Shown here in pieces: positions 1-45,474 of a stretch of 64,000 bases of DNA. Numbering within the stretch: the stretch's first letter is position 1; every line of letters starts with the position of its first letter. Both the position numbers and the translations under genes were made by a program. The stretch lies in sequence record NC_049340.1. One strand, written 5' to 3'. The notes under the pieces are model-generated. The model had not been told where the DNA came from. It made no database searches and was given only the letters and a program-made list of their open reading frames with translations.

Positions 1-398
1 CGTGAGCATTGGATATTATCTAGAACCATGAATATACAACCAATGGTAGAGTAAATTCAAAACAAAGAGTAAGAGTATTTAGGTCATATGAAGAAGCTAT
101 TACAGAAGCAAAAGAGCGAGGTTTAGACGTTTCTGTTATCGGTGGGTCAAAAGTTTATGAAACTGCCTTAAATCTACATGAGAAAGGCAAATATAAGCTG
201 TATGAAGTTCTATTAACTGAATTAGAATCTATTGTTCTTGGTGATACTTACTTCCCACATTTTGAGAAGAAGAATTTTCATAAACATACTCTTGGAGTTG
301 AAGAAGAGTTTTGTGATATAACCAAGGTTAATTATAAAATGTCATTTACTAAGTATGTTCCAAAAACTATTGTTCGTAAATTGGGTGAAAAGTATTAG
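1..398 (+). CDS. folA: Dihydrofolate reductase, 5'-truncated by the window, with apparent 1-nt frameshift near nt 24
   Basis: Frame 1 REHWILSR then frame 3 ...VSVIGGSKVYETAL...GDTYFPHF, DHFR IGG and GDTxFP motifs; TAG at 396-398. Confidence 0.8.
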
Positions 399-4493: not shown

Positions 4494-5987
4494 ATGCTTA
4501 TAAACGTAACACAACAAGATGCATCAGTAACATTATCATATGTTAAGAATAATCTTATAGAGGTTAAGACCTATCCAGTTTATCAATATAATGGTATAGG
4601 TACATATGATTATCGTATTGCTAGATATGATGGTGACCCTGATATCGTAAATAACTTGGTTCATTATAAAGATGATAAGAAAGTTAAGCGTGTCATGTCA
4701 TATAAATTCGATTTTGATACACTAAGAGAATTTATCACACAAGTAATACCTGAGGAAGATAGAAATGAAATATTCACACTAGAAATGCCTGGCGCATATA
4801 AATGTGATATTGAAATTGCTGTAGGTGATGGTGAGATATTCCCTGACCCATATTTAGCCGAAATGGTTATTGATAGTATTCAAATAACCGCACCTAACCT
4901 AAATACGGTAACAATTACATGTAATCCAAGAGTTAAAAAAGCTGGTACACCTGAGGGTGATAAACAAATAAATGATATTGAAGATGCCATAAATAAGCAT
5001 TTTGAACAAGTTGATTTTGTTAAAACATTAACTGATAGGATTAAGTATTCACATATTGTATATGATACGGAAACTGAAATGTTAGAACGTTGGTGGCGAT
5101 TAATTAATACAACATTACATGCTGTTGGATTTTGGAATGGTAGTGGATTTGATGTTCCATACTTATGGAATAGGTGTAAAAAATTAGGTGTTGATGTTGG
5201 TATGGGTTCACCAACTGGTGAAGTATCTAATCGTGAAATGTGGTGTAGACATAGACATATTGTTGATGATATGCAGATTGTTGAAAACTTCTCACATGAT
5301 TTGGGAACAAAACAATCACTTTCATTAGATTATATTAGTAATAGAATTTTTGGGGTTGGTAAAATACCATATGATGGTAGTTTTAGTGACTTATATAATG
5401 GTTGTATTATTAGATATATGACGTATGGTGCTGTTGATACCATATTACAACAATTAATTGAACAAAACCGAAAATACTCAGCAGGTTCTGAGGCGATGGC
5501 ATATTATTGTAAAATACCGATTGTTGATGTTGGTAAAACAACTGCATTAGTTCACGCTGTTATTTGGGATGAGTTATATAAGCAGGGTAAGATAAATGCT
5601 GAGGAATATTTCAAAAAAGAAAAAACACCGTATGGTGGTGGTTTTGTTAAACAGCCAACACGAAAGTTTTGTATGTATCCAGTTGGTGTTGATTTTTCTG
5701 CACTATATCCAAGAGTTATACAAACATGTAATATATCTTTTGAGAATTATATGGGTAGAGTTCGTGATAAAAAACATGCTGAGGAATTACGTGCGCAGGG
5801 ATATTTTGTTGCTGTAAGTGGAAACTATTACAAGAATGATAAAACATATTGTTTAAAATCGGTACAAGATAAGTTTCTATCTGAGCGATATTTGTATAAG
5901 GACTTACAGTTTGCAATATGGCAAGAGGTTGTTCCAACACTAGAGGCTGAATTAAAACGTAGGGGAATAAACCCAAAGAAATTATAA
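4494..5987 (+). CDS. gp43A: DNA polymerase family B, part A (3'-5' exonuclease, palm motif A, first fingers helix)
   Basis: DIE, FWNGSGFDVPYLWNR, YGAVDT, YGGGFVKQP, DFSALYPRVIQTCNISFE. Confidence 0.9.
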   Translation: MLINVTQQDASVTLSYVKNNLIEVKTYPVYQYNGIGTYDYRIARYDGDPDIVNNLVHYKDDKKVKRVMSYKFDFDTLREFITQVIPEEDRNEIFTLEMPGAYKCDIEIAVGDGEIFPDPYLAEMVIDSIQITAPNLNTVTITCNPRVKKAGTPEGDKQINDIEDAINKHFEQVDFVKTLTDRIKYSHIVYDTETEMLERWWRLINTTLHAVGFWNGSGFDVPYLWNRCKKLGVDVGMGSPTGEVSNREMWCRHRHIVDDMQIVENFSHDLGTKQSLSLDYISNRIFGVGKIPYDGSFSDLYNGCIIRYMTYGAVDTILQQLIEQNRKYSAGSEAMAYYCKIPIVDVGKTTALVHAVIWDELYKQGKINAEEYFKKEKTPYGGGFVKQPTRKFCMYPVGVDFSALYPRVIQTCNISFENYMGRVRDKKHAEELRAQGYFVAVSGNYYKNDKTYCLKSVQDKFLSERYLYKDLQFAIWQEVVPTLEAELKRRGINPKKL

Positions 5988-6038
5988 ATTTTTACTAACA
6001 TTGTTTAATACATTAAAACAAAAATAATTTTATTCAAA

Positions 6039-6878
6039 ATGGAAAGTACACAAATCGTAAAATTAAAAAACGTAAAGTTAAGTGAACTACAGACAGCATT
6101 CAAACGTTCTTTATCTATTGGTGGTGAAACATTAAATTTTAAAATCACACCAACATCAATAACAAATGTAGCTGAACATTCAAGTCAATCATTATATAAA
6201 AAATGGGAATTGTCTTTAGGCGATGTTTGTGATAGTGTTGATGGTCAATTCAGAGAATTAAAAGTTGCTATCTATAGTGGTAATGAATTTGTATCAAAGA
6301 TTTTAGGATTCTTTGGACAATTAGCTGACTTAGAAATTCAACACGAAAATGGTAATGTTAATAAAATTAACATCATTAAGTTAGATGAAAAAGGTAAAAG
6401 ACTTTTAAGGATTGCATTAGTTACGGCATCTGTTACATCTTCATATAAAGAAATTGATTCTGATATGGTTTCAAACATCTTTAATCCTGATATGGAAACA
6501 AAGGCTAGTTTAATTTTATCACCTGATGATTTAAAACAATTAAATAACTTAGCTAAGTTAACAACGAATCCTGAGGAACAAACAAACTATATAACTATAA
6601 AATCAGAGAATGGTCAATTAGTTGCTACTGATGGTGCATTTGATATTGCATTACGTGATAGAACAGAAGAGTTGGATGCTATTGAGATTGATAAAGAATT
6701 ATTCTCATGTATTGAGCATGAAAATTATACTGCATCTGTTTATGACCTTGGTGAGAGTGGTATGTTATTATTAAATTCTGAAAATTCAAATTCACAAATT
6801 GCTGTAGTATTATTATCTGATGCTGATGATTCGGTATCATGGGATGATTTTGAAACTGACACAAACTGGGATAATTAA
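6039..6878 (+). CDS. gp45: Sliding clamp, gp45-like
   Basis: Size, beta-rich pattern, LVATDG-like motif, position within the polymerase locus. Confidence 0.6.
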   Translation: MESTQIVKLKNVKLSELQTAFKRSLSIGGETLNFKITPTSITNVAEHSSQSLYKKWELSLGDVCDSVDGQFRELKVAIYSGNEFVSKILGFFGQLADLEIQHENGNVNKINIIKLDEKGKRLLRIALVTASVTSSYKEIDSDMVSNIFNPDMETKASLILSPDDLKQLNNLAKLTTNPEEQTNYITIKSENGQLVATDGAFDIALRDRTEELDAIEIDKELFSCIEHENYTASVYDLGESGMLLLNSENSNSQIAVVLLSDADDSVSWDDFETDTNWDN

Positions 6879-6906
6879 TTTATGTAGTTTATTCTAAATA
6901 TTATTA

Positions 6907-6925
6907 GGGCGCACTTCGTGCGCCC
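6907..6925 (+). terminator. Hairpin/terminator after clamp gene
   Basis: gggcgcac-ttc-gtgcgccc. Confidence 0.6.
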
Positions 6926-6948
6926 ATTCATTAACTAAAACTATATAA

Positions 6949-8004
6949 ATGAGAGCAGAAGATGTGAATGATAGAATACATGAATTGGAGTCTAAAATAT
7001 GCATTAATCCAATAAAATATTTTGATGATATTAACACATCATGTCTAACCGAATTTGAATTAATTTATTTCAAAAAGTATTTAACTGATTACATTTCGAA
7101 TAAGTTGAAAGATGGTGTTTTAATTGACCCAAAATCAAGAATCGGAATGAAGATGTTTAAGAATATTGAAATACTTTTGGATAAGTGTCTTTCTAGAGTT
7201 GAATTATATTCATGGAAACATTGTGACCATACAATAAAGGGGTTCTTGGTTTATAACAAAATAAAAGAAATAAGATGTCCTAATTGCGGAACACTACAAA
7301 ATCCACCAAAAAATATAAGTAGTTTTGTACATACATTTAATGATTTTAGAGTATATTTCAATGATTTATGTAATTCAAAACACACAAATATTTCAAGACA
7401 ATTAACGAATTTGAAGAAATATGGATATGCATCACATTTCTCAACAAAAGAGACTCGTGAAAAAATCCGAAAAACTAATCTTATTAAATATGGTGTTGAT
7501 AATCCAACAAAATATAAAGAAATAAATGATAGAATAATAGAAACAAAATTAAAAAGGTATGGTACATTAAGTTTTAATAAATATGTTAATGATGGAAACT
7601 TTGTTAGAAAGCAATATACATCCAAAGAATGTGAACAATTTCTATCTACATATATAACACCATTATTTAAATATTATGGCGTGGATGATAACATAATGTT
7701 TGGTGATAAAGAGTATTCTGTATTAATACCAAATACATTTAACGATGTACTAAAACACGTAACAATGTATGATTTTTATTCACCAAAATACTCTATTATT
7801 TTTGAATATCATGGTTCATATTGGCATAATAATGAAAAAGCCAAGATAAAGGATAGGGAGAAATTAGAATTTGCTAGAGATTATTTAGGGATTATGAACT
7901 ATTTCACAATATGGGATTATCAAGCAAAGGATAGTAAATTAATTAAAGAAGTACAGAACGAAATTATAAAAATAATAGATGAATATGAGAGCAGAGTTAG
8001 CTGA
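6949..8004 (+). mobile_element. Free-standing homing endonuclease, Vsr-like (EDxHD-type) C-terminal domain
   Basis: KYGVDNP/KRYG repeats; YDFYSPKYSIIFEYHGSYWH...TIWD. Confidence 0.75.
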
Positions 8005-8806
8005 ATACAAAACCATGGTAGGTTCGGAATATAATAACCTAATGCAAAAAAATGAACATGATGACTTAATGAACATTCTAATTGCTGGTGATTATACTAC
8101 AATGTCTGATGATGATTTGATAAAGACATACAAACATGCAAAAAAGATGCAAGATTTTTATAAGATGATGCAACTTTGTTGTAAGCTATTATGTAATTCT
8201 GTATACGGTGGATTTGGTACGGCATCATTACGATATTTTTTACAAGCTGTTGCATCAGATATTACTGCTGAGGGTAGAAATGTTACTCAGTTAGTTGATA
8301 AGATGGCAAATCAATATTTTCAAAAATCTTGGCAAAAGGATTCTAATTGGTTCAATGAGTTAAAAGATAAGTTTCCAAATATCATACCTGATTCATTACA
8401 AGCACCGCACCCAATCAAAAAAGACATATGTATTTATGCGGATACGGATAGTGTTGTTGGTGATTCTATACTAAGATTGTCTGATGGTAGGTCTATTAAA
8501 ATAGAAGATTTATTTAAAGAATCAAAATATACACATACAGACCATAAGGGTAATGAGTTTGCAACACCTACCGTTAATATACTAAATTATACTAAGGATA
8601 ATGAGTTATATTATGCGAAACCAAAACACATAGTTAGACATAAAGTATCCAAGGCAAAATGGAAGTTAAAGACCAAAAGTGGCAAAGAAATTATAGTCAC
8701 TAACGACCATTCTATGATTGTGTTTAGAAGTGGCGAACAACTAACAGTTAAACCAAGTGAAATACTAAAGACTGATAAAATTTTAGTTATTAAAGATGGT
8801 AGATAA
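7985..8806 (+). CDS. gp43B-N: DNA polymerase B part B, N-extein (motif B to YADTD) fused to N-intein (8450-8803)
   Basis: KLLCNSVYGGFG, ITAEGR, YADTD then SVVGDSIL...IIVTNDHSMIV (intein blocks A and B). Confidence 0.9.
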   Translation: MRAELAEYKTMVGSEYNNLMQKNEHDDLMNILIAGDYTTMSDDDLIKTYKHAKKMQDFYKMMQLCCKLLCNSVYGGFGTASLRYFLQAVASDITAEGRNVTQLVDKMANQYFQKSWQKDSNWFNELKDKFPNIIPDSLQAPHPIKKDICIYADTDSVVGDSILRLSDGRSIKIEDLFKESKYTHTDHKGNEFATPTVNILNYTKDNELYYAKPKHIVRHKVSKAKWKLKTKSGKEIIVTNDHSMIVFRSGEQLTVKPSEILKTDKILVIKDGR

Positions 8807-9839
8807 CATAAAGATTTTAATAAATAAACATAGAACAACAAAAGATACCAAATATCTTTTGTTGTTGTTTAATTTATATGAAAAATATCATAATATAATT
8901 TTACCTAGATGTAAAGTTACTGGCGGTCATATATATTGGTATGATACTCGATTCTCTTGGTATAATAACACATTAAATATAAAGGGAAAGTCCAGCTATT
9001 CAAATAAAATTGTTAATGGTAATAAGTATTATTTAACAGTATCTGAACATGGATTGTTTATTAAATTTGGTGACGATTTTAGTAGAATAAATAAACATAG
9101 GTTATTCAACACTATAAATAAATTAACTAAATTTTCTTTTGGCATAAATAACATTGATGCAAAAGCACAAAACAAAAAATGTGCAATAACATTGGATAAT
9201 ATGATTTCTAAATACGGTGTTGAAATAGGTACAGATAAATATAATGCCTATTGTGAAAAGCAAAGAATAACTTCAACTGATAAATATATTCGAAATAAGT
9301 TTGGTGAAGAATATTTAACAAAGGTTAAAGATGCTAAATCACATAATTTTAATTATTATCTTAGATTATCTAATGGTGATGTTGAGGTTGCCAAAGAATT
9401 ACATAAAAAATACCATGAGCAAAGAATTAATAATATTGGTTCAATTTCAAAAAATTCTTTACACTTATTTAATACAATAATAAATAAATTCAATATTTTA
9501 TCAGACTCATATTACGGTGAAAATGAATTTGGATTATATGATAAAGAGTTTAAGCGATATTATAAATATGACTTTACATCAACAAAATATAAATTCATTA
9601 TAGAATTTAATGGTGATGTTTTTCATGGAAATCCAAAAATTTATAATGAAACTGATAGACCAAATTTTTTTAATACTAAAAAAACATGTTCTGAAATATG
9701 GGCATATGATAAACAAAAAATAAATTTAGCTAAAGAGCATGGTTTTGATGTTTTTGTTGTATGGGAAAGTGAATTTAATAATGAATATATAGAACTAGTG
9801 AATAGATTGTTTAATACTATAAAACATAAAATAAAATAG
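8796..9839 (+). mobile_element. Free-standing Vsr-like homing endonuclease between the split-intein halves
   Basis: YDFTSTKYKFIIEFNGDVFHGNP...FVVWESE; own ATG and TAG. Confidence 0.8.
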
Positions 9840-9840
9840 G

Positions 9841-10821
9841 ATGGAATATTTATTTGATGAAATAGAATCAATTGAGTGTATAGGTGAATTTGAAAATGAA
9901 TTTGTATATGATATTGAAATGGAAGACGAATCACACACATTCATAGCAAATGATATACTTGTACATAATTCAAATTATTTAACATTTGATGAGATATTCA
10001 AATCAATTGATTGTGATTATGAAAATACGCCTACAAAAGAATGTGTTGATTTTATCGAATACTTCTTTAAGAATAAGATGAACGCAATGTATGATAAATT
10101 CCTAACAAAATACTATGATAGTAGAGGGTGTGACAACCATCATATTTTTGAATTAGAGGTTATTGGTGGGTATGGTGTATTTATTGCAAAAAAGAAGTAT
10201 ATCTTTAGTAAATTATGGGATGATGGTAACTATGTTGCTAGTAAAGGTGGATTGAAGACAACAGGTGTTGAAATTATTCAATCAAGTACATCAAATTTTG
10301 TTAGGAGTAGTATAAAAACTTTTGTAAATTTGATATTCTCTAAAAGAGGGAAAATATCTAGTGATTTATTCTTTAATATGTGTAATGCACTTAGACGTAA
10401 ATTAGAAACAGTACCGATTGATGATATATCTAAAATTAGTGGACTAAAGACATACGATAAATATGTTGTTGAGTGGAAAGATAGAATTATTCTAGAAAAG
10501 AAATGTCCAGCACCAGTTAGAGGTGCAGTTAGATACAATCATTTAATCTATCAAAAAGGTTTGCAGAATAAGTATGCATACTTAAAGAATGGTATGAAGT
10601 GTAAAATGTATTATGATAAGCAAGGGAATCCATTTGCATACCATGATGAATCATTTCCACATGAAATTGCACCACCAATATCTAGAGAAATTCAGTTAGA
10701 GAAATTAATATTTTCACCAGTAAAACGATTGGTTAGTGGTGGAATGATTGAGGGAAGTTTATCAAACATGGGAACTGGTAAGAATTTACCAAGTTTTAAG
10801 AACATGTTTAAGAAGAAATAA
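9841..10821 (+). CDS. gp43B-C: C-intein (9841-9969, 43 aa) fused to DNA polymerase B C-extein
   Basis: VYDIEMEDESHTFIANDILVHN|SNY; then FIAKKKY, LKTTGVEIIQSST. Confidence 0.9.
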   Translation: MEYLFDEIESIECIGEFENEFVYDIEMEDESHTFIANDILVHNSNYLTFDEIFKSIDCDYENTPTKECVDFIEYFFKNKMNAMYDKFLTKYYDSRGCDNHHIFELEVIGGYGVFIAKKKYIFSKLWDDGNYVASKGGLKTTGVEIIQSSTSNFVRSSIKTFVNLIFSKRGKISSDLFFNMCNALRRKLETVPIDDISKISGLKTYDKYVVEWKDRIILEKKCPAPVRGAVRYNHLIYQKGLQNKYAYLKNGMKCKMYYDKQGNPFAYHDESFPHEIAPPISREIQLEKLIFSPVKRLVSGGMIEGSLSNMGTGKNLPSFKNMFKKK

Positions 10822-37188: not shown

Positions 37189-38631
37189 ATGAATACATTA
37201 ATTATTGATGGTACATTCATGGCGCAACGTAACCGTAATGCAGGTGGATTTACTTTCTTAGATAACCCAAACCGTGACCGAGCCGAGTTATTAGAGGGGT
37301 TAGCAAACACAATTGTTGCTGAAATGAATCAATTTAAAGGTTTAATTTCACGTGTTGTTTGGTGTTTGGATTACTCTTCATGGAGAAAAAATATATCACC
37401 AGTTTTACCATTAGGTATGGATAATATAGGTGGTGATGCAGACTATAAAGCAAACCGTGACCATTCAGATTACGACTCAGCTAAATTTTGGGATGCTGTT
37501 AACGAATTTACTGAAATGTTATCAAAGGCTGGTGTTTGTGTAATTAAACAATATGGTGCTGAGGCTGATGATTCATCATATATAGCATCTAGAATATTAT
37601 CTAATAAAGGATTGAAGTCTATTCTATGGTCATCAGATGGTGATTATAAATCATTCGTAGAACCAAATGTTTTATTATTTAAAATGCCTAAGAGGGAACT
37701 ATATAAGATACCAACAGAAAAGAAAAACTTAATGGAGTCTGTGTTTGGTGGTGGTGTTGACCCAACAAATCAAATAATTGAATCAGCAGGTGGTCAAAGT
37801 TTGGTACATGAAGTGCATCCATTATACTTTGTTTTAGAGCAGATTGTTAGAGGTCAGAAAAAAGATAATATACCACCATTAATTCAATGGTTATCATCAA
37901 CTGGAACAAGACAATACAGACCATCAGAAACACACGTCAAAAAGACATTAAGTGAGTTAAATTTAACACAAAAAGATTTAACCGAGGATATGTTATATGA
38001 TGAATCATTTATTAGTTCATTTGTGCGTAAATTATTACCAATAACAAAAGTTGATGGTTCTCTTAAAATTAAAAAAATAACTAAGAAGTCGTTAGTTGAT
38101 TATAACATAATTTTAAAGAAAGGTATTGATACTTACGAAAGTCCTGTTGATGAAAATGCTTATGACTTTAATGTGTTATCACACTTAATGCATGTACTTA
38201 CCGAAGAATTAAACTTAGTAATGACCAATACAACATTAAGTAATGCATATGATAAAATCATTAACCAACAACCAACAAATGAAAATGTTAATGATGCATT
38301 AAAATCTATTGGTGTTGATAACTTCAACTACACACTATTATTTGACCCAGCATTTTTATCTGAGTTACATAGAATTTGTTACACTAATAAAGTTGTTGAA
38401 CATAGCTTAGGTGTTTGGGCATCTTCTAGAAAATTAGCATATGTTTCTAAAAAAGAAATACCAAGTGATTTGTGGGAATCTTGTACAAAAACTTTAATAA
38501 GTGAGTTCAAAACAAAGAAGTTAGATAAATCAAAATTTAAAAGTGGTCAGTCATTAATGGCAACAGTTGCACCAAAACAAAATGATGGTTCATTCTTTGG
38601 TAACTTCAATTTAGAAGATGTTGACTTATGA
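37189..38631 (+). CDS. rnh: 5'-3' exonuclease/RNase H (T4 rnh, FEN-like)
   Basis: LIIDG, WCLD..SWRK, YKANR, EADD, SSDGD, GQKKDNIP. Confidence 0.8.
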   Translation: MNTLIIDGTFMAQRNRNAGGFTFLDNPNRDRAELLEGLANTIVAEMNQFKGLISRVVWCLDYSSWRKNISPVLPLGMDNIGGDADYKANRDHSDYDSAKFWDAVNEFTEMLSKAGVCVIKQYGAEADDSSYIASRILSNKGLKSILWSSDGDYKSFVEPNVLLFKMPKRELYKIPTEKKNLMESVFGGGVDPTNQIIESAGGQSLVHEVHPLYFVLEQIVRGQKKDNIPPLIQWLSSTGTRQYRPSETHVKKTLSELNLTQKDLTEDMLYDESFISSFVRKLLPITKVDGSLKIKKITKKSLVDYNIILKKGIDTYESPVDENAYDFNVLSHLMHVLTEELNLVMTNTTLSNAYDKIINQQPTNENVNDALKSIGVDNFNYTLLFDPAFLSELHRICYTNKVVEHSLGVWASSRKLAYVSKKEIPSDLWESCTKTLISEFKTKKLDKSKFKSGQSLMATVAPKQNDGSFFGNFNLEDVDL

Positions 38632-38882
38632 TGATGGAAATGTTTTATGCGATAGGATTGTTAATAACAACAGTCCTTTCGTTCTTAGCTGGTAAGAGGG
38701 TAGAAGATAAATTAATGGATATTTATGATGAAATTGGTCAAGTAGATATTGAAGATTTATCAGATGAAATGCAAGAAAAAATTGGATATATGGGGATGCT
38801 TGTTTCCGCATTATATATTTGTGGTTCAATTTCCTTTGTTATATTAATGTTAAAAATAATAATTAAAATTTATAGTAATTAA
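38628..38882 (+). CDS. Small two-TM membrane protein
   Basis: Two hydrophobic segments. Confidence 0.6.
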   Translation: MMMEMFYAIGLLITTVLSFLAGKRVEDKLMDIYDEIGQVDIEDLSDEMQEKIGYMGMLVSALYICGSISFVILMLKIIIKIYSN

Positions 38883-40466
38883 ATGAAACAAAATTTAGAT
38901 ATACTAAGATATATTTTAGAGAATGGTGATGAAAAATCTGATAGAACTGGTGTAGGAACTATATCATGTTTTGGATTACAAATGCAACCAATTGACCTTA
39001 GAAAAGGTTTTCCGATAGAAACAACAAAGAAGATATTTTTTGATTCTGTAATACATGAAAATCTTTGGTTTTTAATGGGTACTGATAGGATAGATTATTT
39101 AGAGGAAAATGGTGTATCAATATGGAGGGATTGGTGTCCTATAAGTGGTAAGTATTTTAGAGATAAAAGAGTAATCGGATTAGTTGGTAAGAAAAAAGAT
39201 AAAACATTCAAACTAGTTAAAGATTTTAAATACCCTACAGAATTTAGGAAAGATGAATCTAGTATAGATTATCATTTGGCTGGTATTTGGCATAAAATGA
39301 TGAATAGGTGTTATAATAAAAAATCACATAATTATAGATTTTATGGTGGTAAGGGTGTTACTGTACATAATGATTGGCAAGATTGTGAAACATTTATCAG
39401 AGAATCTAAAGAAATTTTCAACTGGGATAACAAACTTGAAGATTGGAATGATTATCAATTAGATAAAGATTATTATAGTTCAAATTACTATTCTAAAGAA
39501 ACTTGTATTTGGTTACATAGATTAGAAAATTCAATTTACACTACAGAATTTAAACCATTTAAGTTAATAATAAACGGTAAATCTATTACTTGTTTAACAA
39601 CAAAAGAAGCTGAAATAAAAAGTGGAATACCTTGGACTAATTTAAATAGATGGTCTAATAATGGTATTTCTGACAGATGTGATTTGAAATATAGGTGGAT
39701 TAAAAATATAAAAATAGAATATTTACCTAAATATAAAACTAGAAATTATAGATTACTCTTTAGAATTGGTTCAGTAGGTGCAATGTATGGTGTTCAATGG
39801 AATAAATGGAAAACATCAGATGGTAAAGAAATCAATCAAATACAAAATATGATTGATAGACTAAAGAATAATCCTGATTGTAGAAGAAATATTGTAACTT
39901 CTTGGAATCCTGAAACTGTTCCAGTAGATGGATTATCATTTGAAGAGAATATCGCTAATGGTAAGGGTGCATTAGCTAATTGTCATGGATTCTTTCAAGT
40001 GTATACAGCAAAAGTTTTTGGTAGTGAGCGAATGGAGTTATTCAAAAAAGAATATCCTGATAAGTATATGAAAGAAGTCTATGAAGATGTACCACAATCA
40101 AAATTCGATGAATATTTAGATAGTGTTGGATTCCCATCAAGATATTTAGATATGAAAATGTATCAAAGAAGTTGTGATGCTTTCATTGGTAAATTCTTTA
40201 ATACAGCAGGTTACTCACTTTTAATGCATATGATTGGTCAAGTTGTTAATATGATTCCTAGATACTTTATACATTCTTTTGGTGATGTTCATATTTATAA
40301 GAATCACATAGAACAAGTAAAGTTACAGTTAAGTAGGGATGAAAGACCGATACCAACTTTAAAACTTAATAAGGATATAAAAAATATTTATGACTTCAAA
40401 TTTGAAGATATTGAACTAATTGGATATGACCCACACCCATGGATTAAAGCACCAATTGCAATATAA
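38883..40466 (+). CDS. thyA: Thymidylate synthase with in-frame HNH-type endonuclease insertion
   Basis: DRTGVGT, IWRDW, ALANCH, YQRSCD, GDVHIY..H; ~209-aa insert between IWRDW and GSVGAMYG. Confidence 0.9.
   Translation: MKQNLDILRYILENGDEKSDRTGVGTISCFGLQMQPIDLRKGFPIETTKKIFFDSVIHENLWFLMGTDRIDYLEENGVSIWRDWCPISGKYFRDKRVIGLVGKKKDKTFKLVKDFKYPTEFRKDESSIDYHLAGIWHKMMNRCYNKKSHNYRFYGGKGVTVHNDWQDCETFIRESKEIFNWDNKLEDWNDYQLDKDYYSSNYYSKETCIWLHRLENSIYTTEFKPFKLIINGKSITCLTTKEAEIKSGIPWTNLNRWSNNGISDRCDLKYRWIKNIKIEYLPKYKTRNYRLLFRIGSVGAMYGVQWNKWKTSDGKEINQIQNMIDRLKNNPDCRRNIVTSWNPETVPVDGLSFEENIANGKGALANCHGFFQVYTAKVFGSERMELFKKEYPDKYMKEVYEDVPQSKFDEYLDSVGFPSRYLDMKMYQRSCDAFIGKFFNTAGYSLLMHMIGQVVNMIPRYFIHSFGDVHIYKNHIEQVKLQLSRDERPIPTLKLNKDIKNIYDFKFEDIELIGYDPHPWIKAPIAI
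39138..39764 (+). mobile_element. In-frame HNH-type endonuclease domain within ThyA (boundaries approximate)
   Basis: WHKMMNRCY...YGGKGVTV...W, LDKDYYSSNYYSKETCIW...N, NUMOD1/HTH-like tail. Confidence 0.75.
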
Positions 40467-40500
40467 AAACAAGGCACTTAATGTGCCTTGTTTTTTGTTT
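40466..40500. terminator. Intrinsic terminator
   Basis: aaaaacaaggcac-ttaat-gtgccttgttttt. Confidence 0.8.
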
Positions 40501-40550
40501 TTATACATATTTGACAATACATTGTTTTATTACACAAAATTAAACAATAT

Positions 40551-41012
40551 ATGAATAACCAAAATGAATTAATAGACCAAATAGATTATTTCCCATTCTT
40601 ACGTGCATTTTGGTCAACTGATGGTACATATGAAAGGTTAACTAATAGAGCCAAGCAAGCACATATACGCAATCTATGGCAATTACTTTCACGTGACCAA
40701 CCTCAGATTATGCAGATGTTAAATAAGGAATACAATGTGGCTGTTATGGATGCAATTCACGAAGCATCAAAACACGCTAACCGACAACCACAGTATTGTT
40801 ATATTAAGGCTAGACCAAAAAACTCAAAGACTTTAGATAGGATTAAAAAATTCTCACCATGGGTTGTAAATGAATTTAGAACATCCAACAATTTAGATTT
40901 AAAGGATTATGAGTTCTTTTGTGATATCGAACCTGATTTAGTGATTGCATCTATGGATGCCATAGAAAAAACACTACAACAAGTTAAGAAACCTAAAAAG
41001 ACAAAGAGATAA
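40551..41012 (+). CDS. Hypothetical protein, possibly gp62-like clamp-loader small subunit
   Basis: Size and helical pattern only. Confidence 0.35.
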   Translation: MNNQNELIDQIDYFPFLRAFWSTDGTYERLTNRAKQAHIRNLWQLLSRDQPQIMQMLNKEYNVAVMDAIHEASKHANRQPQYCYIKARPKNSKTLDRIKKFSPWVVNEFRTSNNLDLKDYEFFCDIEPDLVIASMDAIEKTLQQVKKPKKTKR

Positions 41013-41027
41013 ATAACCATACATAAT

Positions 41028-42757
41028 ATGAGTAATGACAAAAAGACCCCTAATATAGATTCGAAAAAGTCCAAAAATAAAAAGGATGAAAAGTATGTTG
41101 GTGTTTTGCTTGACAATGGTATTGAGATACCAAAGAAATCCAAAAAAGCATTTAAAGCACTTTGCGAGTCAGATATTGAATATATCACATTAATTTACCA
41201 TGATGAATACTTATCACATGATGAGAAAATGGATAAGTTAACAAAAAATATGGTGTTGTTGGTCGAACTATTCGTGATTGGTGGGTAAAACTTGGGTTAT
41301 CTAATCCACCAAGTAAGTTACCACCTCAATTACAAAGAGCAATGATGCGCTCAATTGATGATGATACAGATATATTACTTGTGACATCAGCACAAAATAC
41401 AACTAGTATTAACTACAATCAATGGAATGGTATGTTAGAATATTCCAAGTTTATTGAGAAAAAATATAAAAAGAAAGTACAAATAGTTGTAATTCCTGTT
41501 AGGTATAGAAACCCAACATCACCAACCGAGGATATTTCTGTTAAGAATAAAAAACAACAATGGTGGGTTGATGAAGTTGATGAATACCTATACCATAATA
41601 AAATAGAATTTGGTGATAGTGTTATTGATTGTAATTTACCAATTAGAGTAACAACACAAAATCCTTTAAATGGATTGGATTCTATTGCAGGTGACCACCA
41701 TTATATTGTAGGTTCACTTAGACATCACTTCAAAATTATGCCTAGATTCCGTGGTGAGGAACTTAGAGCAATGGCAACAACAGGTTCATTAACTGTTAAA
41801 AACTATTCACGCAGTTTAAGTGGTTCAAAAGGATTCTTTAACCACTCATATGGGTTTACAATTATTGAGAAAAAGAAAGATGGAACATGTCATGTACCTA
41901 GATGTGTATCTGTAGAAGATAATGGAAACTTCACCGACTTAATACACAGACATAAAAATGGTAAATTAAAAATTATCAAGAAGGTTGATGCTATGGTAAT
42001 GGGTGATATTCACCGTGAAGTACTTGATGAAAAGTTAATGAAAGCAACAATTAAATTAACTAATGCATTAAGACCTAAAGCAGTTGTAGTACATGATGTT
42101 CTCGATGGATACAGATTCAATCATCACGAGAAGAAAGATATGTTCATTCTAAGACAAAAAATTGTTGAGGGTAAGTATCTAATTAAAGAAGAAATTAATC
42201 AAGCGGTTGAATTTCCTCAGGAAGTTCTAGACTCTATTAAATGTGAAAAGGTTTATGTAATTGAATCTAACCACGATGTATTCCTAGACAGATATATCAA
42301 TGAGGGTAACTGGAAAAATGATTTACATAACTCACCAGCATATTTAGAGTATGCGTTGATACAACAAACAATTAACTTAAAAGAACATGGTAACATTTTC
42401 GGATATTTAGTTAATACTAGATATAAAGATGATGATAGAATACAATATGTTAAGTATGGTGATGTTGTTAAGATTAATAGAATTAACGTATCTAACCATG
42501 GTGATGCAGGTGTAAATGGTTCAAGAGGGAATGTACAAACATTCAAGAAATTAAATGTTAGGACAATCACCGCACATACACACTCTCCAAGTATTCAAGA
42601 TGGTAACATTTGTGTAGGTTTAAGTGCAGTATTAGACCAATATTACACAAGACGTGGAGCAAGTACACACACACAAGCACACGCATTAATACATAAAACA
42701 GGAAAACGACAATTAGTTGTTTTCTGTGATGATTATAAAATATCACACTTCATTTAA
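41028..42757 (+). CDS. HTH plus calcineurin-like metallophosphoesterase; frameshift at A-run ~41247 joins two ORFs
   Basis: KYGVVGRTIRDWW (HTH); GDIH, HDVLDG, SNHD, NHGD, AHTH. Confidence 0.7.
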
Positions 42758-42775
42758 TAAAAAATCGGAAATACT

Positions 42776-42805
42776 TTTGTGTTTCCGATTTTTTATTTAT
42801 ATTTG
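42776..42805 (+). promoter_or_regulatory. Bacteroidota sigma70-type early promoter
   Basis: TTTG-N18-TATATTTG. Confidence 0.65.
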
Positions 42806-42827
42806 TAATATATTTAAAATTCGAAAG

Positions 42828-43496
42828 ATGCAATCATATTATAGAATTAACAAAGGTGAAAAAGTAAAGATTAAAGGTTTAACTCATTTGAATTTATCGT
42901 TCAAAAATATTAGAGAACTAGAAATTGTTAGTAATGTTTTAGAAAAACTTAATTTACACAACAATCAATTAACATCATTTGATGGAAGTGGGTTAAGTAA
43001 TTTAAAAACACTTTATTTAAGCAACAATCAATTAACATCATTTGATGGAAGTTGGTTAAGTAATTTAAAAACACTTGATTTATACAACAATCAATTAACC
43101 TTTATTTATACAACAATCAATTAACTAATATTAATATAGATTTATCACGATTAATAAAATTAACATCTTCACAAATTGTTGAAGATATTACTAATACTAA
43201 ATGGTTTGGTGTTAATTTTATACCAACAAAAATAATAAGTACTAAACAGCTTGGTGAATATATTATTTATTCAAGTGTTGATTGTTATGTAGCATCAAAA
43301 TATAATTATTATACACACGGTAAAACAATTAAAGATGCTATTAAAGATTTAAACTTTAAAATTCTTCAATAATAGCATCTTTAATTGTTTATGAATTAGT
43401 TAACGAAATTAAAGAACTTAATAATGTTGATGTATTACCTCTTGATGAAGTATTAAACATTACAAAAGTTATTATGGTAATGAAAAATTAAAATAA
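42828..43496 (+). pseudogene. Leucine-rich-repeat protein, disrupted
   Basis: LxLxNNQLTSFDGSxLSNLKTL 21-aa repeats (63-bp units from 42960, 43023, truncated at 43086); downstream frames broken. Confidence 0.7.
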
Positions 43497-43509
43497 TTAT
43501 TTAATTAAC

Positions 43510-43541
43510 AAAAAAAGGAACTAGATTGAGTTCCTTTTTTT
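43510..43541. terminator. Intrinsic terminator
   Basis: aaaaaaaggaact-agattg-agttccttttttt. Confidence 0.8.
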
Positions 43542-43584
43542 GTTTTTCAATACATATACAAAAGGATTCTAATATACAATAAAC

Positions 43585-45474
43585 ATGGATTACGGAAATG
43601 ACATTAATATAGATGGTAAAGTAACTGCCACCGAAAATATACAAGCAAATGCAGTAACTATTCCAATAACTGTTGGTTTTACAAACTTACCTAATACTGT
43701 AATAGATTGGTCAAAATCTAACACATATATTTTGGATATGACTCAAATGAATTTAAGTGGTGGTAATGCTACTACCGATTTAATATTCATTGAGGGTAAT
43801 ACACAAAATGTTAAGAATAGATTAATAATTAAACAACCATCGGCACATGCACCGAATCATGTTGTATTAACTTTAAAGGCATTTGCAACATCAACACAAA
43901 CAACGGCACATACTATTGATGGTGCAACCACAATTCAAGGGCAAATAAATGTTGCTGGTAGAACATCTGTATTAGAATTTAATTTCTTCAATAACACATA
44001 CAGAAACATTGGTTCTGAATACACAGAGAATACAAATTATAGTTCAAATACTGTTATTGTTGATGGTGAAACATATAACCAATCATTATCTAAATTAGAT
44101 GAGGTTTTTGGTAAGATTGCACCATTACCACCGTTAATTACAGAGACAGCTAAATTAACACAAACATGGGATGCATCAACACCAGTTCAAACAGGTTGGA
44201 AATTACTTTCTAATGCTGGTAACATAACAAACATGACATTTGTTGACCCTATAATTCACATAAAATCATTTAGAGTTGCAACAACAGGAAACACATCAGC
44301 TACAGTTGATGCTGTTAATAAAGGTTCTGTAGCAAATAATAGTTTTGGTGCAACGTTACCTAGTTCACAAACAAACTTAGGTTTAACTATTAATAAAGTA
44401 CAATATAATGCATTACATCCAGCATTTGAAGCATCTTTAAATATTAGTGGTGCTAGTGCAGTACCAGCAGGTAGTGCAGAAAAAGTTTTAATTATAACAG
44501 TTGATTCAATTAGTGATAACTTTAGATTTAGACGATACACAAAACCAAGTCAATTAACTGCACCAACCGCATCTGTTTTTAGTTGTGATGTAATACCATC
44601 AACGGATTATGTTTGTGGTATTCCTGTAGTTAGACAAGGTAAAAACCTTAAACCTACAATACAATTCAAAAACATATCATATAAAGATGGTTCTGATGGT
44701 TGTTATGGAACAACAGTTGGTAAGATTATTGGAAATTCTATTAATGAAATCATAATTAATTCTGATACTAATACTAATATGTTGGCATCCGCACCACATT
44801 CACCAGCAATGCCATTAACTATTCCAGTAAATGCAAATGTTTTTGAACAAAATGCGACATTAACTGCATATAATTATGTTGCTCAGATAGGTTCTAATGG
44901 TGATAGTGCAACACTTTCAAATAGTACAAATCCTATAATAATTGATAGTAAAACAAATCAATCATTATTTGGAATTGACCACACAAAACCATTAACGGAT
45001 GCAGTAAATAATACAAAACCATTAATATTAGGTGGATTAGTACAGTATCCAAATACAGATTATTCAAATACGTGGAATGGTTCAGCACCTCATGGTGGAC
45101 TAAACTATACTACTATATCAAATGATAGATATATTGAATTATCAATATCATTGGCTGGACACTCTAGAGTTAGGGTTAACTTCTCTAATCAAAGTGGATT
45201 TAGTAATAGTGCGATTGAATATTCAAGTGCATATGCAGTAGAAGTTAGAAGAGCAGATAAGAGTGGTGAAGTTTATAATGGTAATAGTGCATATGATGGT
45301 GTTGGTGTCGTTGCAAACGGTGATGGTGCATTAGATGTTGCACAGAGTACACAAAGTACCAAGATGTTAACTTTAGGTGAGGTTGTAACAACAACGGTAA
45401 CTGTTAGAATAATATTAAAAAGTGGTTCGGTTCATAAATTTGACCAATCAGTAAGTTTAACCGCATTACAATAA
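43585..45474 (+). CDS. Putative virion (tail/baseplate) protein
   Basis: 629 aa, Thr/Ser/Asn beta-rich; late-type motif 43549-43556. Confidence 0.6.
   Translation: MDYGNDINIDGKVTATENIQANAVTIPITVGFTNLPNTVIDWSKSNTYILDMTQMNLSGGNATTDLIFIEGNTQNVKNRLIIKQPSAHAPNHVVLTLKAFATSTQTTAHTIDGATTIQGQINVAGRTSVLEFNFFNNTYRNIGSEYTENTNYSSNTVIVDGETYNQSLSKLDEVFGKIAPLPPLITETAKLTQTWDASTPVQTGWKLLSNAGNITNMTFVDPIIHIKSFRVATTGNTSATVDAVNKGSVANNSFGATLPSSQTNLGLTINKVQYNALHPAFEASLNISGASAVPAGSAEKVLIITVDSISDNFRFRRYTKPSQLTAPTASVFSCDVIPSTDYVCGIPVVRQGKNLKPTIQFKNISYKDGSDGCYGTTVGKIIGNSINEIIINSDTNTNMLASAPHSPAMPLTIPVNANVFEQNATLTAYNYVAQIGSNGDSATLSNSTNPIIIDSKTNQSLFGIDHTKPLTDAVNNTKPLILGGLVQYPNTDYSNTWNGSAPHGGLNYTTISNDRYIELSISLAGHSRVRVNFSNQSGFSNSAIEYSSAYAVEVRRADKSGEVYNGNSAYDGVGVVANGDGALDVAQSTQSTKMLTLGEVVTTTVTVRIILKSGSVHKFDQSVSLTALQ

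Follow-up and report, generated by a model that had tools for sequence, protein, structure and literature searches.

An in-frame homing-endonuclease-like cassette carried inside the thymidylate synthase of Tenacibaculum phage PTm1

The last 64 kb of the genome of Tenacibaculum phage PTm1 (AP019524/NC_049340, 224,680 bp), the stretch of DNA analyzed here and referred to as the window, carries a thymidylate synthase gene, thyA (PTm1_ORF-285), on the plus strand at positions 38883-40466, and a homing-endonuclease-like cassette sits in frame inside this gene. The interval corresponds to record positions 199563-201146 (100% match) and forms a single uninterrupted open reading frame (ORF) of 527 residues, cassette included. 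PF00303 is the only Pfam family seen in ORF-285, covering residues 3-527 (3.8e-82, 275.9 bits with a cut-off of 24.3), and the NCBIfam model TIGR03284 scores 278.8 bits with a curated cut-off of 108.35. The two public records disagree on the product, named "thymidylate synthase and pyrimidine hydroxymethylase" in GenBank AP019524 and "HNH endonuclease" in RefSeq NC_049340, and name conflicts of this kind mean that ThyA-cassette fusions can mislead both phage annotation and metabolic inference.

Alignment of ORF-285 with Escherichia coli ThyA yields three blocks (residues 1-89, 296-376, and 422-527), and residues 90-295 (∼206) and 377-421 (∼45) have no E. coli counterpart. The ThyA of Tenacibaculum phage pT24, with 319 residues and 66% identity to the PTm1 enzyme, does not contain the cassette, and residues 85-295 of PTm1 (211 residues, window 39135-39767) occupy the place of three residues in pT24 ThyA. 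Measured against pT24, the coordinates proposed in the initial annotation, which had described a homing-type domain fused in frame inside ThyA within a single ORF, are exact. The cassette is present in PTm1 and PTm5 and missing in pT24. None of 20,000 shuffles of its 633 nucleotides stays open, the other two plus-strand frames are interrupted by 18 and 45 stops, and alternative ORFs on either strand reach 44 residues at most. Its GC content is 0.25, compared to 0.29-0.31 in the flanks.

We looked for splicing machinery at the protein and RNA levels. No Hint or intein Pfam family matches ORF-285 at E ≤ 1, and no intein fold appears among the PDB fold matches of the cassette model, which is composed of helical, beta-beta-alpha, and helix-turn-helix parts. 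The cassette starts with Cys85 in PTm1, but a conserved intein-type first Cys, Ser, or Thr was not found, the equivalent residue being Arg, Ser, Gln, Ala, Lys, His, Ile, or Cys in 27 relatives with a cassette at the same site. It ends with Ile295, followed by Gly296 at the +1 position. The last residue is variable in the same-site relatives, with no conserved terminal Asn. Of the 28 same-site proteins listed, 23 have Gly at +1 and the others Asn, Leu, Arg, or Asp; none has Cys, Ser, or Thr there.

At the RNA level, an Rfam scan of window positions 38000-41200 gave no group I or group II intron at E ≤ 10, while the same scan, run as a positive control, recovered the group I intron RF00028 at 56.2 bits in a related thyA from a JGI metagenome contig (L004:6001-8777). 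This one gene contains an in-frame cassette and also, ∼60 codons past the thyA active-site region, a group I intron bearing an I-TevI-like GIY-YIG ORF. Because the cassette and a classical GIY-YIG intron are found together in it, the gene serves as an internal control for the intron scan. The PTm1 thyA cassette has no hallmarks of RNA or protein splicing, and the earlier statements that it has neither an intein C-terminal His-Asn/Cys-Ser-Thr junction nor a Hint domain nor a group I core all stand. We reject its identity as an intein, given the lack of a Hint profile, of conserved junction residues, and of an intein-like fold, and as a group I or II intron, given that nothing matches at E ≤ 10, that all 633 nucleotides are open in the host frame, and that a conserved folded domain is encoded.

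A cryptic splicing element, either a new kind of intein or a fully open in-frame intron that is removed after all, would be in keeping with the Cys at the start of the PTm1 cassette, and the authors who described the ShiLan insertion, a comparable phage element considered below, could not fully exclude unknown splicing in their case (PMC11855218). We find such an element very improbable here. The residue at the start of the cassette varies among relatives, no conserved Asn closes it and Gly is found at +1, there is no Hint profile or fold, no intron model matches at E ≤ 10 compared to 56 bits for the control intron, and a folded and conserved protein domain fills the entire length of the cassette.

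The cassette matches four PHROG families named HNH endonuclease (2081, 374, 953, and 3377) with E values down to 3.8e-26, and it is collinear, from the first to the last conserved strand, with complete stand-alone phage proteins of ∼200 residues annotated as HNH or helix-turn-helix homing endonucleases. An AlphaFold2 (AF2) model of the cassette alone has a predicted local distance difference test (pLDDT) score of 82, rising above 90 in the conserved core (residues 128-220, window 39264-39542), which is predicted to consist of a helical part followed by a beta-beta-alpha unit and is the putative catalytic module. The core is preceded by an N-terminal linker (39135-39263) with a conserved beta-strand element at residues 97-101 and followed by a putative DNA-binding tail (residues 224-280, 39552-39722) of two strands and a helix-turn-helix. 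A C-terminal linker (39723-39767), with a conserved strand at residues 287-291, takes the chain back to ThyA. Both end segments are kept at the corresponding termini of the stand-alone relatives and both are predicted as strands in the model of the full-length protein, as would fit a compact stalk through which the chain exits the ThyA loop and returns to it.

The tail aligns with residues 121-170 of I-HmuI in an hhalign comparison made with family alignment A6 (probability 95.9%, E 6.5e-9), a profile search retrieves the I-HmuI chain 1u3e_M (PDB 1U3E) at E 5.7e-6, and PF22083 is matched in 30 of 90 cassette relatives. Judged by these profile comparisons, the tail is homologous to the NUMOD-like helix-turn-helix DNA-binding domain of I-HmuI, bearing out the helix-turn-helix-like tail that had been proposed from the DNA. 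In the core, Trp136, Arg142, Cys143, Tyr144, Trp165, Asp194, Lys195, Asp196, and Tyr203 are found in 98-100% of 156 proteins. The invariant Asp-Lys-Asp at residues 194-196 (39462-39470) lies where the first strand ends in the beta-beta-alpha unit, for which the core model gives, in insert numbering, strands at 107-110 and 125-128 and a helix at 129-137. Its three residues are kept in 100/99/100% of the embedded and 100/100/100% of the stand-alone copies, and Lys occupies position 195 in 154 of 155 proteins. The I-HmuI sequence, read from SPO1, has Asp-His-Lys-Asp at this place, matched by eye only, followed by Trp and Asn, and the cassette has Asp-Lys-Asp, Trp, and Asn at similar spacing. The putative metal-ligand positions are Asp194, kept in 100%, and Asn/Gln216, kept in 97-98%, with a weak fold match to 1U3E (E=0.21). 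By eye, and without statistical support, the core would thus resemble an HNH unit minus its catalytic His. A sequence search of the PDB with the cassette alone gave no match at E ≤ 10, and we found no characterized member of the cassette family in the literature searched.

On the host side, the N-terminal ThyA segment (residues 1-84, 38883-39134) aligns with residues 1-84 of E. coli ThyA and with pT24 ThyA and has the conserved Ile-Trp-x-x-Trp element at its end, and the C-terminal segment, together with the stop codon, spans residues 296-527 (39768-40466). Aligned with E. coli ThyA, the N-terminal segment supplies Arg21, Glu59, and Trp81/84, and the C-terminal segment supplies Tyr302, Arg334/335, Cys367, Arg429, Ser430, Asp432, Asn440, His470, and Tyr472. 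Structure prediction, proposed in the initial annotation as a check, gives a full-length model with a pLDDT of 90.4 and a predicted template modeling score (pTM) of 0.83, in which the ThyA core superposes on E. coli ThyA with a template modeling (TM) score of 0.95-0.97. In the model, the ThyA catalytic residues and the fold are intact despite the cassette, and the fusion presumably retains ThyA activity. A regular-expression check of host catalytic motifs across the family (43/58) was too crude and was not used.

A second insertion of 45 residues (377-421, window 40011-40145), unmatched in E. coli ThyA and outside the mobile cassette, is predicted to be helical (helices within 380-414) and adjoins the strand of the catalytic Cys on its C-terminal side. 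It is present in pT24 ThyA, and a longer form is found in the metagenomic ThyA proteins P0002 and P0004. Because it is common to the insert-free pT24 ThyA, we read it from these alignments as a lineage feature of the PTm1 ThyA clade, unrelated to the mobile cassette. A further stretch of ∼13 residues (∼346-360, 39918-39962) is likewise missing from E. coli ThyA and present in pT24. The ThyA proteins of Lactobacillus casei and Enterococcus faecalis have a natural insert of ∼50 residues in the small domain. The PTm1 insertion site may correspond to this small-domain loop of L. casei ThyA, as the initial annotation has it, a placement loosely consistent with the fold matches of PTm1, among which are structures of 315-316 residues. 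Such an insert shows that the region tolerates extra residues, but it is a short structural elaboration unrelated to proteins of mobile elements.

PTm1 has one other gene of the thymidylate synthase (TS) superfamily, ORF-167, which lies outside the window at record positions 123174-123851 (L023:23174-23851) and encodes a divergent protein of 225 residues that matches PF00303 at 35 bits and, best of all, the short solved structures 9IQU/9IQC (E 3e-42). We considered ORF-167 as a second canonical thyA and rejected it, since it is a very divergent TS-superfamily paralogue; a role in pyrimidine modification is possible. The annotation of PTm1 record positions 1-205146 contains no ThyX. The fused gene is the only canonical thyA of PTm1, with some functional overlap with ORF-167 possible. 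The combination of an inactive fusion and a second thyA, envisaged earlier as speaking against a tolerated insertion, is found only in part: a second TS-superfamily gene does exist, but it is not a canonical thyA and the fused gene is not degenerate. Two further annotations touch on nucleotide metabolism in this phage. A glucosyltransferase is annotated for hydroxymethylcytosine at record positions 152402-153817, and an ORF annotated as dihydrofolate reductase (DHFR; record 160507-160734, window 1-54) encodes 75 residues, far below the size of a normal DHFR, and may be a fragment; it bears on the folate and deoxythymidine monophosphate (dTMP) metabolism of PTm1.

An exhaustive search with the cassette returned 5,065 cluster representatives at E ≤ 1e-3. 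The 156 proteins that we classified comprise the best 150 of these representatives, five proteins from another search, and PTm1 itself. Of the 156, 107 are ThyA proteins with the cassette in frame, 89 of them with both ThyA flanks present, and two insertion loops in ThyA are used. At the PTm1 site (∼33 proteins), the cassette lies between the Trp-rich element and a Gly-x-x-Gly-x-x-Tyr-Gly element and measures 199-224 residues in all but one case; at the second site (at least 51 proteins), 15-20 residues further on and after a Tyr-Gly-x-Gln element, it carries an extra N-terminal module. Isolated phages with a cassette in thyA include the Enterococcus phages vB_EfaM_A2 and 163 and Bacillus phage 015DV002, and a DNA match inside the insert region suggests that Bacillus phage Kioshi should be added. 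ThyA is the dominant host, the other fusion partners being an RNase T-type exonuclease once and possibly a DHFR once. In-frame residence of the cassette in ThyA recurs across the family and is not unique to PTm1.

The family also exists outside ThyA. Its stand-alone members sit between complete, unrelated genes, and we rejected the idea that these proteins of 200 residues are pieces of split thyA genes, given that they have no ThyA flanks and that their neighbors begin at their own N termini. Two pieces of DNA polymerase flank a member in Bacillus phage BSP10, as they flank I-HmuI in SPO1, with weak support from Rfam for an intron context (17 bits, E=0.24). In Bacillus phage Chotacabras (L008:2267-3286) a free-standing member, annotated as two adjacent ORFs for the core and then the helix-turn-helix, is found directly upstream of an intact, cassette-free thyA. 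The invariant residues are kept at the same 98-100% in embedded and stand-alone copies; because these shares are equal, the embedded copies are under the same constraint as the stand-alone ones and not decaying.

The clearest signs of movement come from Schiekvirus-type Enterococcus phages, for which we compared 30 thyA alleles with 81-97% DNA identity to the A2 allele. Only two of the 30, A2 and 163, have the cassette. Between these two, the synonymous divergence (dS) is 0.58 in upstream thyA, falls to 0.008 in the 209-codon cassette (3 differences), and is 0.13 downstream. The near-identical tract extends over nucleotides ∼271-1160, starting no more than 18 nucleotides from the 5′ junction of the cassette and including ∼245 nucleotides of downstream thyA. 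Upstream of the cassette, A2 is 97.5-97.9% identical to the insert-free phages PEF1 and Bill, and 163 is 98.3-98.6% identical to the insert-free 113 and iF6. Because the tract is shared but the upstream flanks match different phages, one cassette together with a piece of donor thyA must have entered two thyA backgrounds. Compared to insert-free PEF1, A2 is 97.5% identical over nucleotides 1-282, 79.4% over 981-1160, and 99.1% over 1161-1476 (Fisher p = 1.3e-14), and over the same nucleotides 981-1160 A2 and 163 are 100% identical. The cassette-free thyA of PEF1 (L019:301-1263) has its own segment of ∼35 residues at the second (class B) loop, and, since the cassette-bearing alleles do not have it, the incoming donor tract is likely to have replaced this segment.

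The cassette has thus been transferred horizontally, and recently, among relatives of the PTm1 element, and the patchy distribution, which the initial annotation named as a check, is observed: 2 of 30 alleles have the cassette, and the near-identical copies, with a co-converted flank, sit in thyA backgrounds that have diverged. As read from the alignments, the A2/163 mosaic is the signature expected of break-induced (homing-like) gene conversion, and because the shared tract is asymmetric and sharply bounded at the insertion point, a site-specific event is favored over random recombination.

Such a signature could also be left by a cassette that is mobile but dependent, i.e., inactive or hindered as a fusion and served by a break from a free-standing paralogue or from another thyA-targeting enzyme such as a GIY-YIG intron enzyme. 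In T4, I-TevIII/MobE provides a documented case of a defunct endonuclease homing in trans (PMC2790892), the L004 thyA combines the cassette with a GIY-YIG group I intron, and the Chotacabras member sits as a free-standing copy just upstream of thyA. PTm1, however, has no second copy of the cassette family, so none is there to act in trans, and the 98-100% retention of all invariant residues in embedded copies is not what passive cargo should show. We regard a dependent cassette as decidedly unlikely; the embedded domain itself presumably makes the DNA break.

The reading that we consider probable is that PTm1 thyA contains a non-splicing, in-frame, mobile endonuclease-like cassette that is tolerated as an extra domain of ThyA. 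A whole gene for a homing-endonuclease-like protein, minus start and stop, would have come to lie in the thyA reading frame at a surface loop, and thymidylate synthase would be made with a permanent additional domain that is not removed at the RNA or protein level. The two ends of the cassette would run as neighboring strands, one out of the ThyA loop and the other back into it, and it is because of this proposed arrangement, with the fold and the catalytic residues intact, that ThyA would tolerate it. The family, living also as free-standing genes and inside introns, would spread between phage thyA alleles when phages co-infect a cell, through gene conversion triggered by a DNA break, and would take part of the donor thyA along. 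By analogy with the Enterococcus phages, the PTm1 copy may still be mobile. The earlier proposal of a selfish nuclease persisting as a tolerated passenger is upheld as far as a separate loop domain, an intact ThyA fold, and a selfish and mobile nature are concerned, but not in the nuclease class that it assigned to the core.

Several observations weigh against this reading, most of them concerning the core. No Pfam nuclease or HNH profile (e.g., PF13392 or PF01844) matches PTm1 or 90 relatives, and I-HmuI itself, as a control, matches PF13392 at 1.8e-10. In the hhalign comparison of the cassette family with I-HmuI only the tail was aligned, leaving the HNH motif unaligned, and a Foldseek search of the PDB with the cassette model gave nothing significant, the best match being I-HmuI at E=0.21. 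The position of the catalytic His is either taken by the invariant Lys or deleted beside it. With the likeness to HNH seen by eye only and without statistical support, the label HNH-type, for which the PHROG family names are the sole basis, is not established, and we do not retain it from the initial annotation; with an invariant Lys at or beside the catalytic His position, any nuclease activity of the cassette is putative. The survey of the family has its own bias, as a search of protein databases favors in-frame cases in a single ORF, and for 17 partial proteins a split gene or the end of a contig could be the explanation. The signature of mobility comes from the Enterococcus-phage relatives and not from PTm1, which is 99.9% identical to PTm5 and has its nearest insert-free relative at 71% DNA identity. 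Finally, PTm1 has the divergent TS-superfamily paralogue, so the phage may be able to do without ThyA activity of the fusion.

These features of the core could also be expected of an exapted DNA-binding domain, descended from a homing endonuclease, that no longer cuts, has been moved by ordinary homologous recombination during co-infection, and performs some service for ThyA, e.g., tethering dTMP synthesis to DNA or regulating the gene. The missing HNH catalytic His and the lack of a nuclease profile match would fit such a domain, as would the well-conserved DNA-binding tail and the conservation of the cassette in more than 100 ThyA lineages. Against it, free-standing copies and copies located in introns, for which mobility is the only plausible role, have the same invariant core without the His, the cassette is patchy among near-identical phages (2/30), and the shared tract is sharply bounded and asymmetric, with its start within 18 nucleotides of the insertion point. 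We consider exaptation rather unlikely on balance.

The closest precedent for the PTm1 cassette is the ShiLan domain, a stop-free, non-splicing insertion in an actinobacteriophage DNA methylase with a homing-like disjunct distribution (Arsenault, Gosselin & Gogarten 2025, PMC11855218). Like the PTm1 cassette, it interrupts a phage gene at a conserved site, leaves the host frame free of stops, has no intein or intron features, and is predicted to remain in the protein as a protruding element (PMC11855218). Its HNH endonuclease is, however, encoded in another frame, the in-frame product is an unstructured loop, and the methylase is non-essential (PMC11855218), whereas the PTm1 domain that resembles an endonuclease is read in the host frame, has a confident predicted fold and no alternative ORF, and resides in an enzyme of core nucleotide metabolism. 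An out-of-frame endonuclease of the ShiLan type hidden in the PTm1 cassette was rejected, as no alternative ORF exceeds 44 residues. In HNH-bearing inteins, too, an endonuclease domain is translated in frame as part of a host protein and occupies a conserved site, but such inteins possess Hint splicing blocks as well as junction nucleophiles, and they are excised (10.1101/2025.01.02.630785).

Among intron-encoded enzymes, I-HmuI of the SPO1 DNA polymerase intron (PDB 1U3E) and the I-HmuII/I-BasI group share with the cassette the order of an N-terminal catalytic part followed by a NUMOD-like helix-turn-helix. I-HmuI is a modular monomeric phage homing enzyme to which the PTm1 tail is homologous, and a member of the PTm1 family occupies the DNA polymerase interruption of BSP10. 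Unlike the cassette, I-HmuI has NUMOD4 and an HNH_3 motif and is intron encoded and separately translated; the core of the PTm1 family matches neither motif and is without the catalytic His. The GIY-YIG enzymes I-TevI and I-BmoI, from group I introns in thyA/td, target the same gene family, and both kinds of element meet in the L004 thyA, but they belong to a different nuclease family, occupy a different insertion site, and are removed by RNA splicing. In Aeh1, where mobE lies in nrdA (genes in pieces), and in organelle in-frame endonuclease fusions, an endonuclease is likewise found in coding sequence without a splicing element; there the host gene is split or extended at its end, whereas the PTm1 host is a single chain with an internal extra domain. 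We found no description of a ThyA cassette in the literature searched, with subscription journals outside its coverage.

To our knowledge, homing endonuclease genes have been thought to survive in essential genes only by means of self-splicing introns or inteins. PTm1 and at least 107 ThyA cases would instead represent a whole endonuclease-like protein carried permanently as an extra domain of an enzyme that presumably still works, and still moving between genomes. This would extend the single 2025 ShiLan precedent to an in-frame domain in core nucleotide metabolism, bears on possible origins of inteins and on the rise of new multidomain enzymes, and points to a large uncharacterized nuclease-like family (5,065 cluster representatives) with a conserved core that has no canonical HNH histidine. 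More tentatively, and with more doubt than belief on our part, in-frame, never-spliced residence in an essential enzyme, at its surface loops, might be a distinct and widespread lifestyle of homing endonuclease genes beside introns, inteins, and free-standing copies, with the Asp-Lys-Asp core as a new catalytic variant among the beta-beta-alpha-metal nucleases and the obligate ThyA dimer pairing two monomeric, nickase-like modules so as to break both strands of an empty thyA.

Selfish elements of other kinds are also annotated in the PTm1 genome. In the DNA polymerase region (window 4494-10821, record 165174-171501), the polymerase is in several pieces, among them an "intein-containing split DNA polymerase precursor," with a VSR endonuclease ORF between. 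Outside the window, at record positions 42342-43991, the annotation places an intein splicing domain in a ribonucleotide reductase (RNR) alpha subunit, with a second piece of RNR after it. Downstream of thyA, at window 42828-43124 (record 203508-203804), an ORF of 98 residues is annotated as "E3 ubiquitin-protein ligase SlrP," probably an over-reaching name for a short repeat protein.

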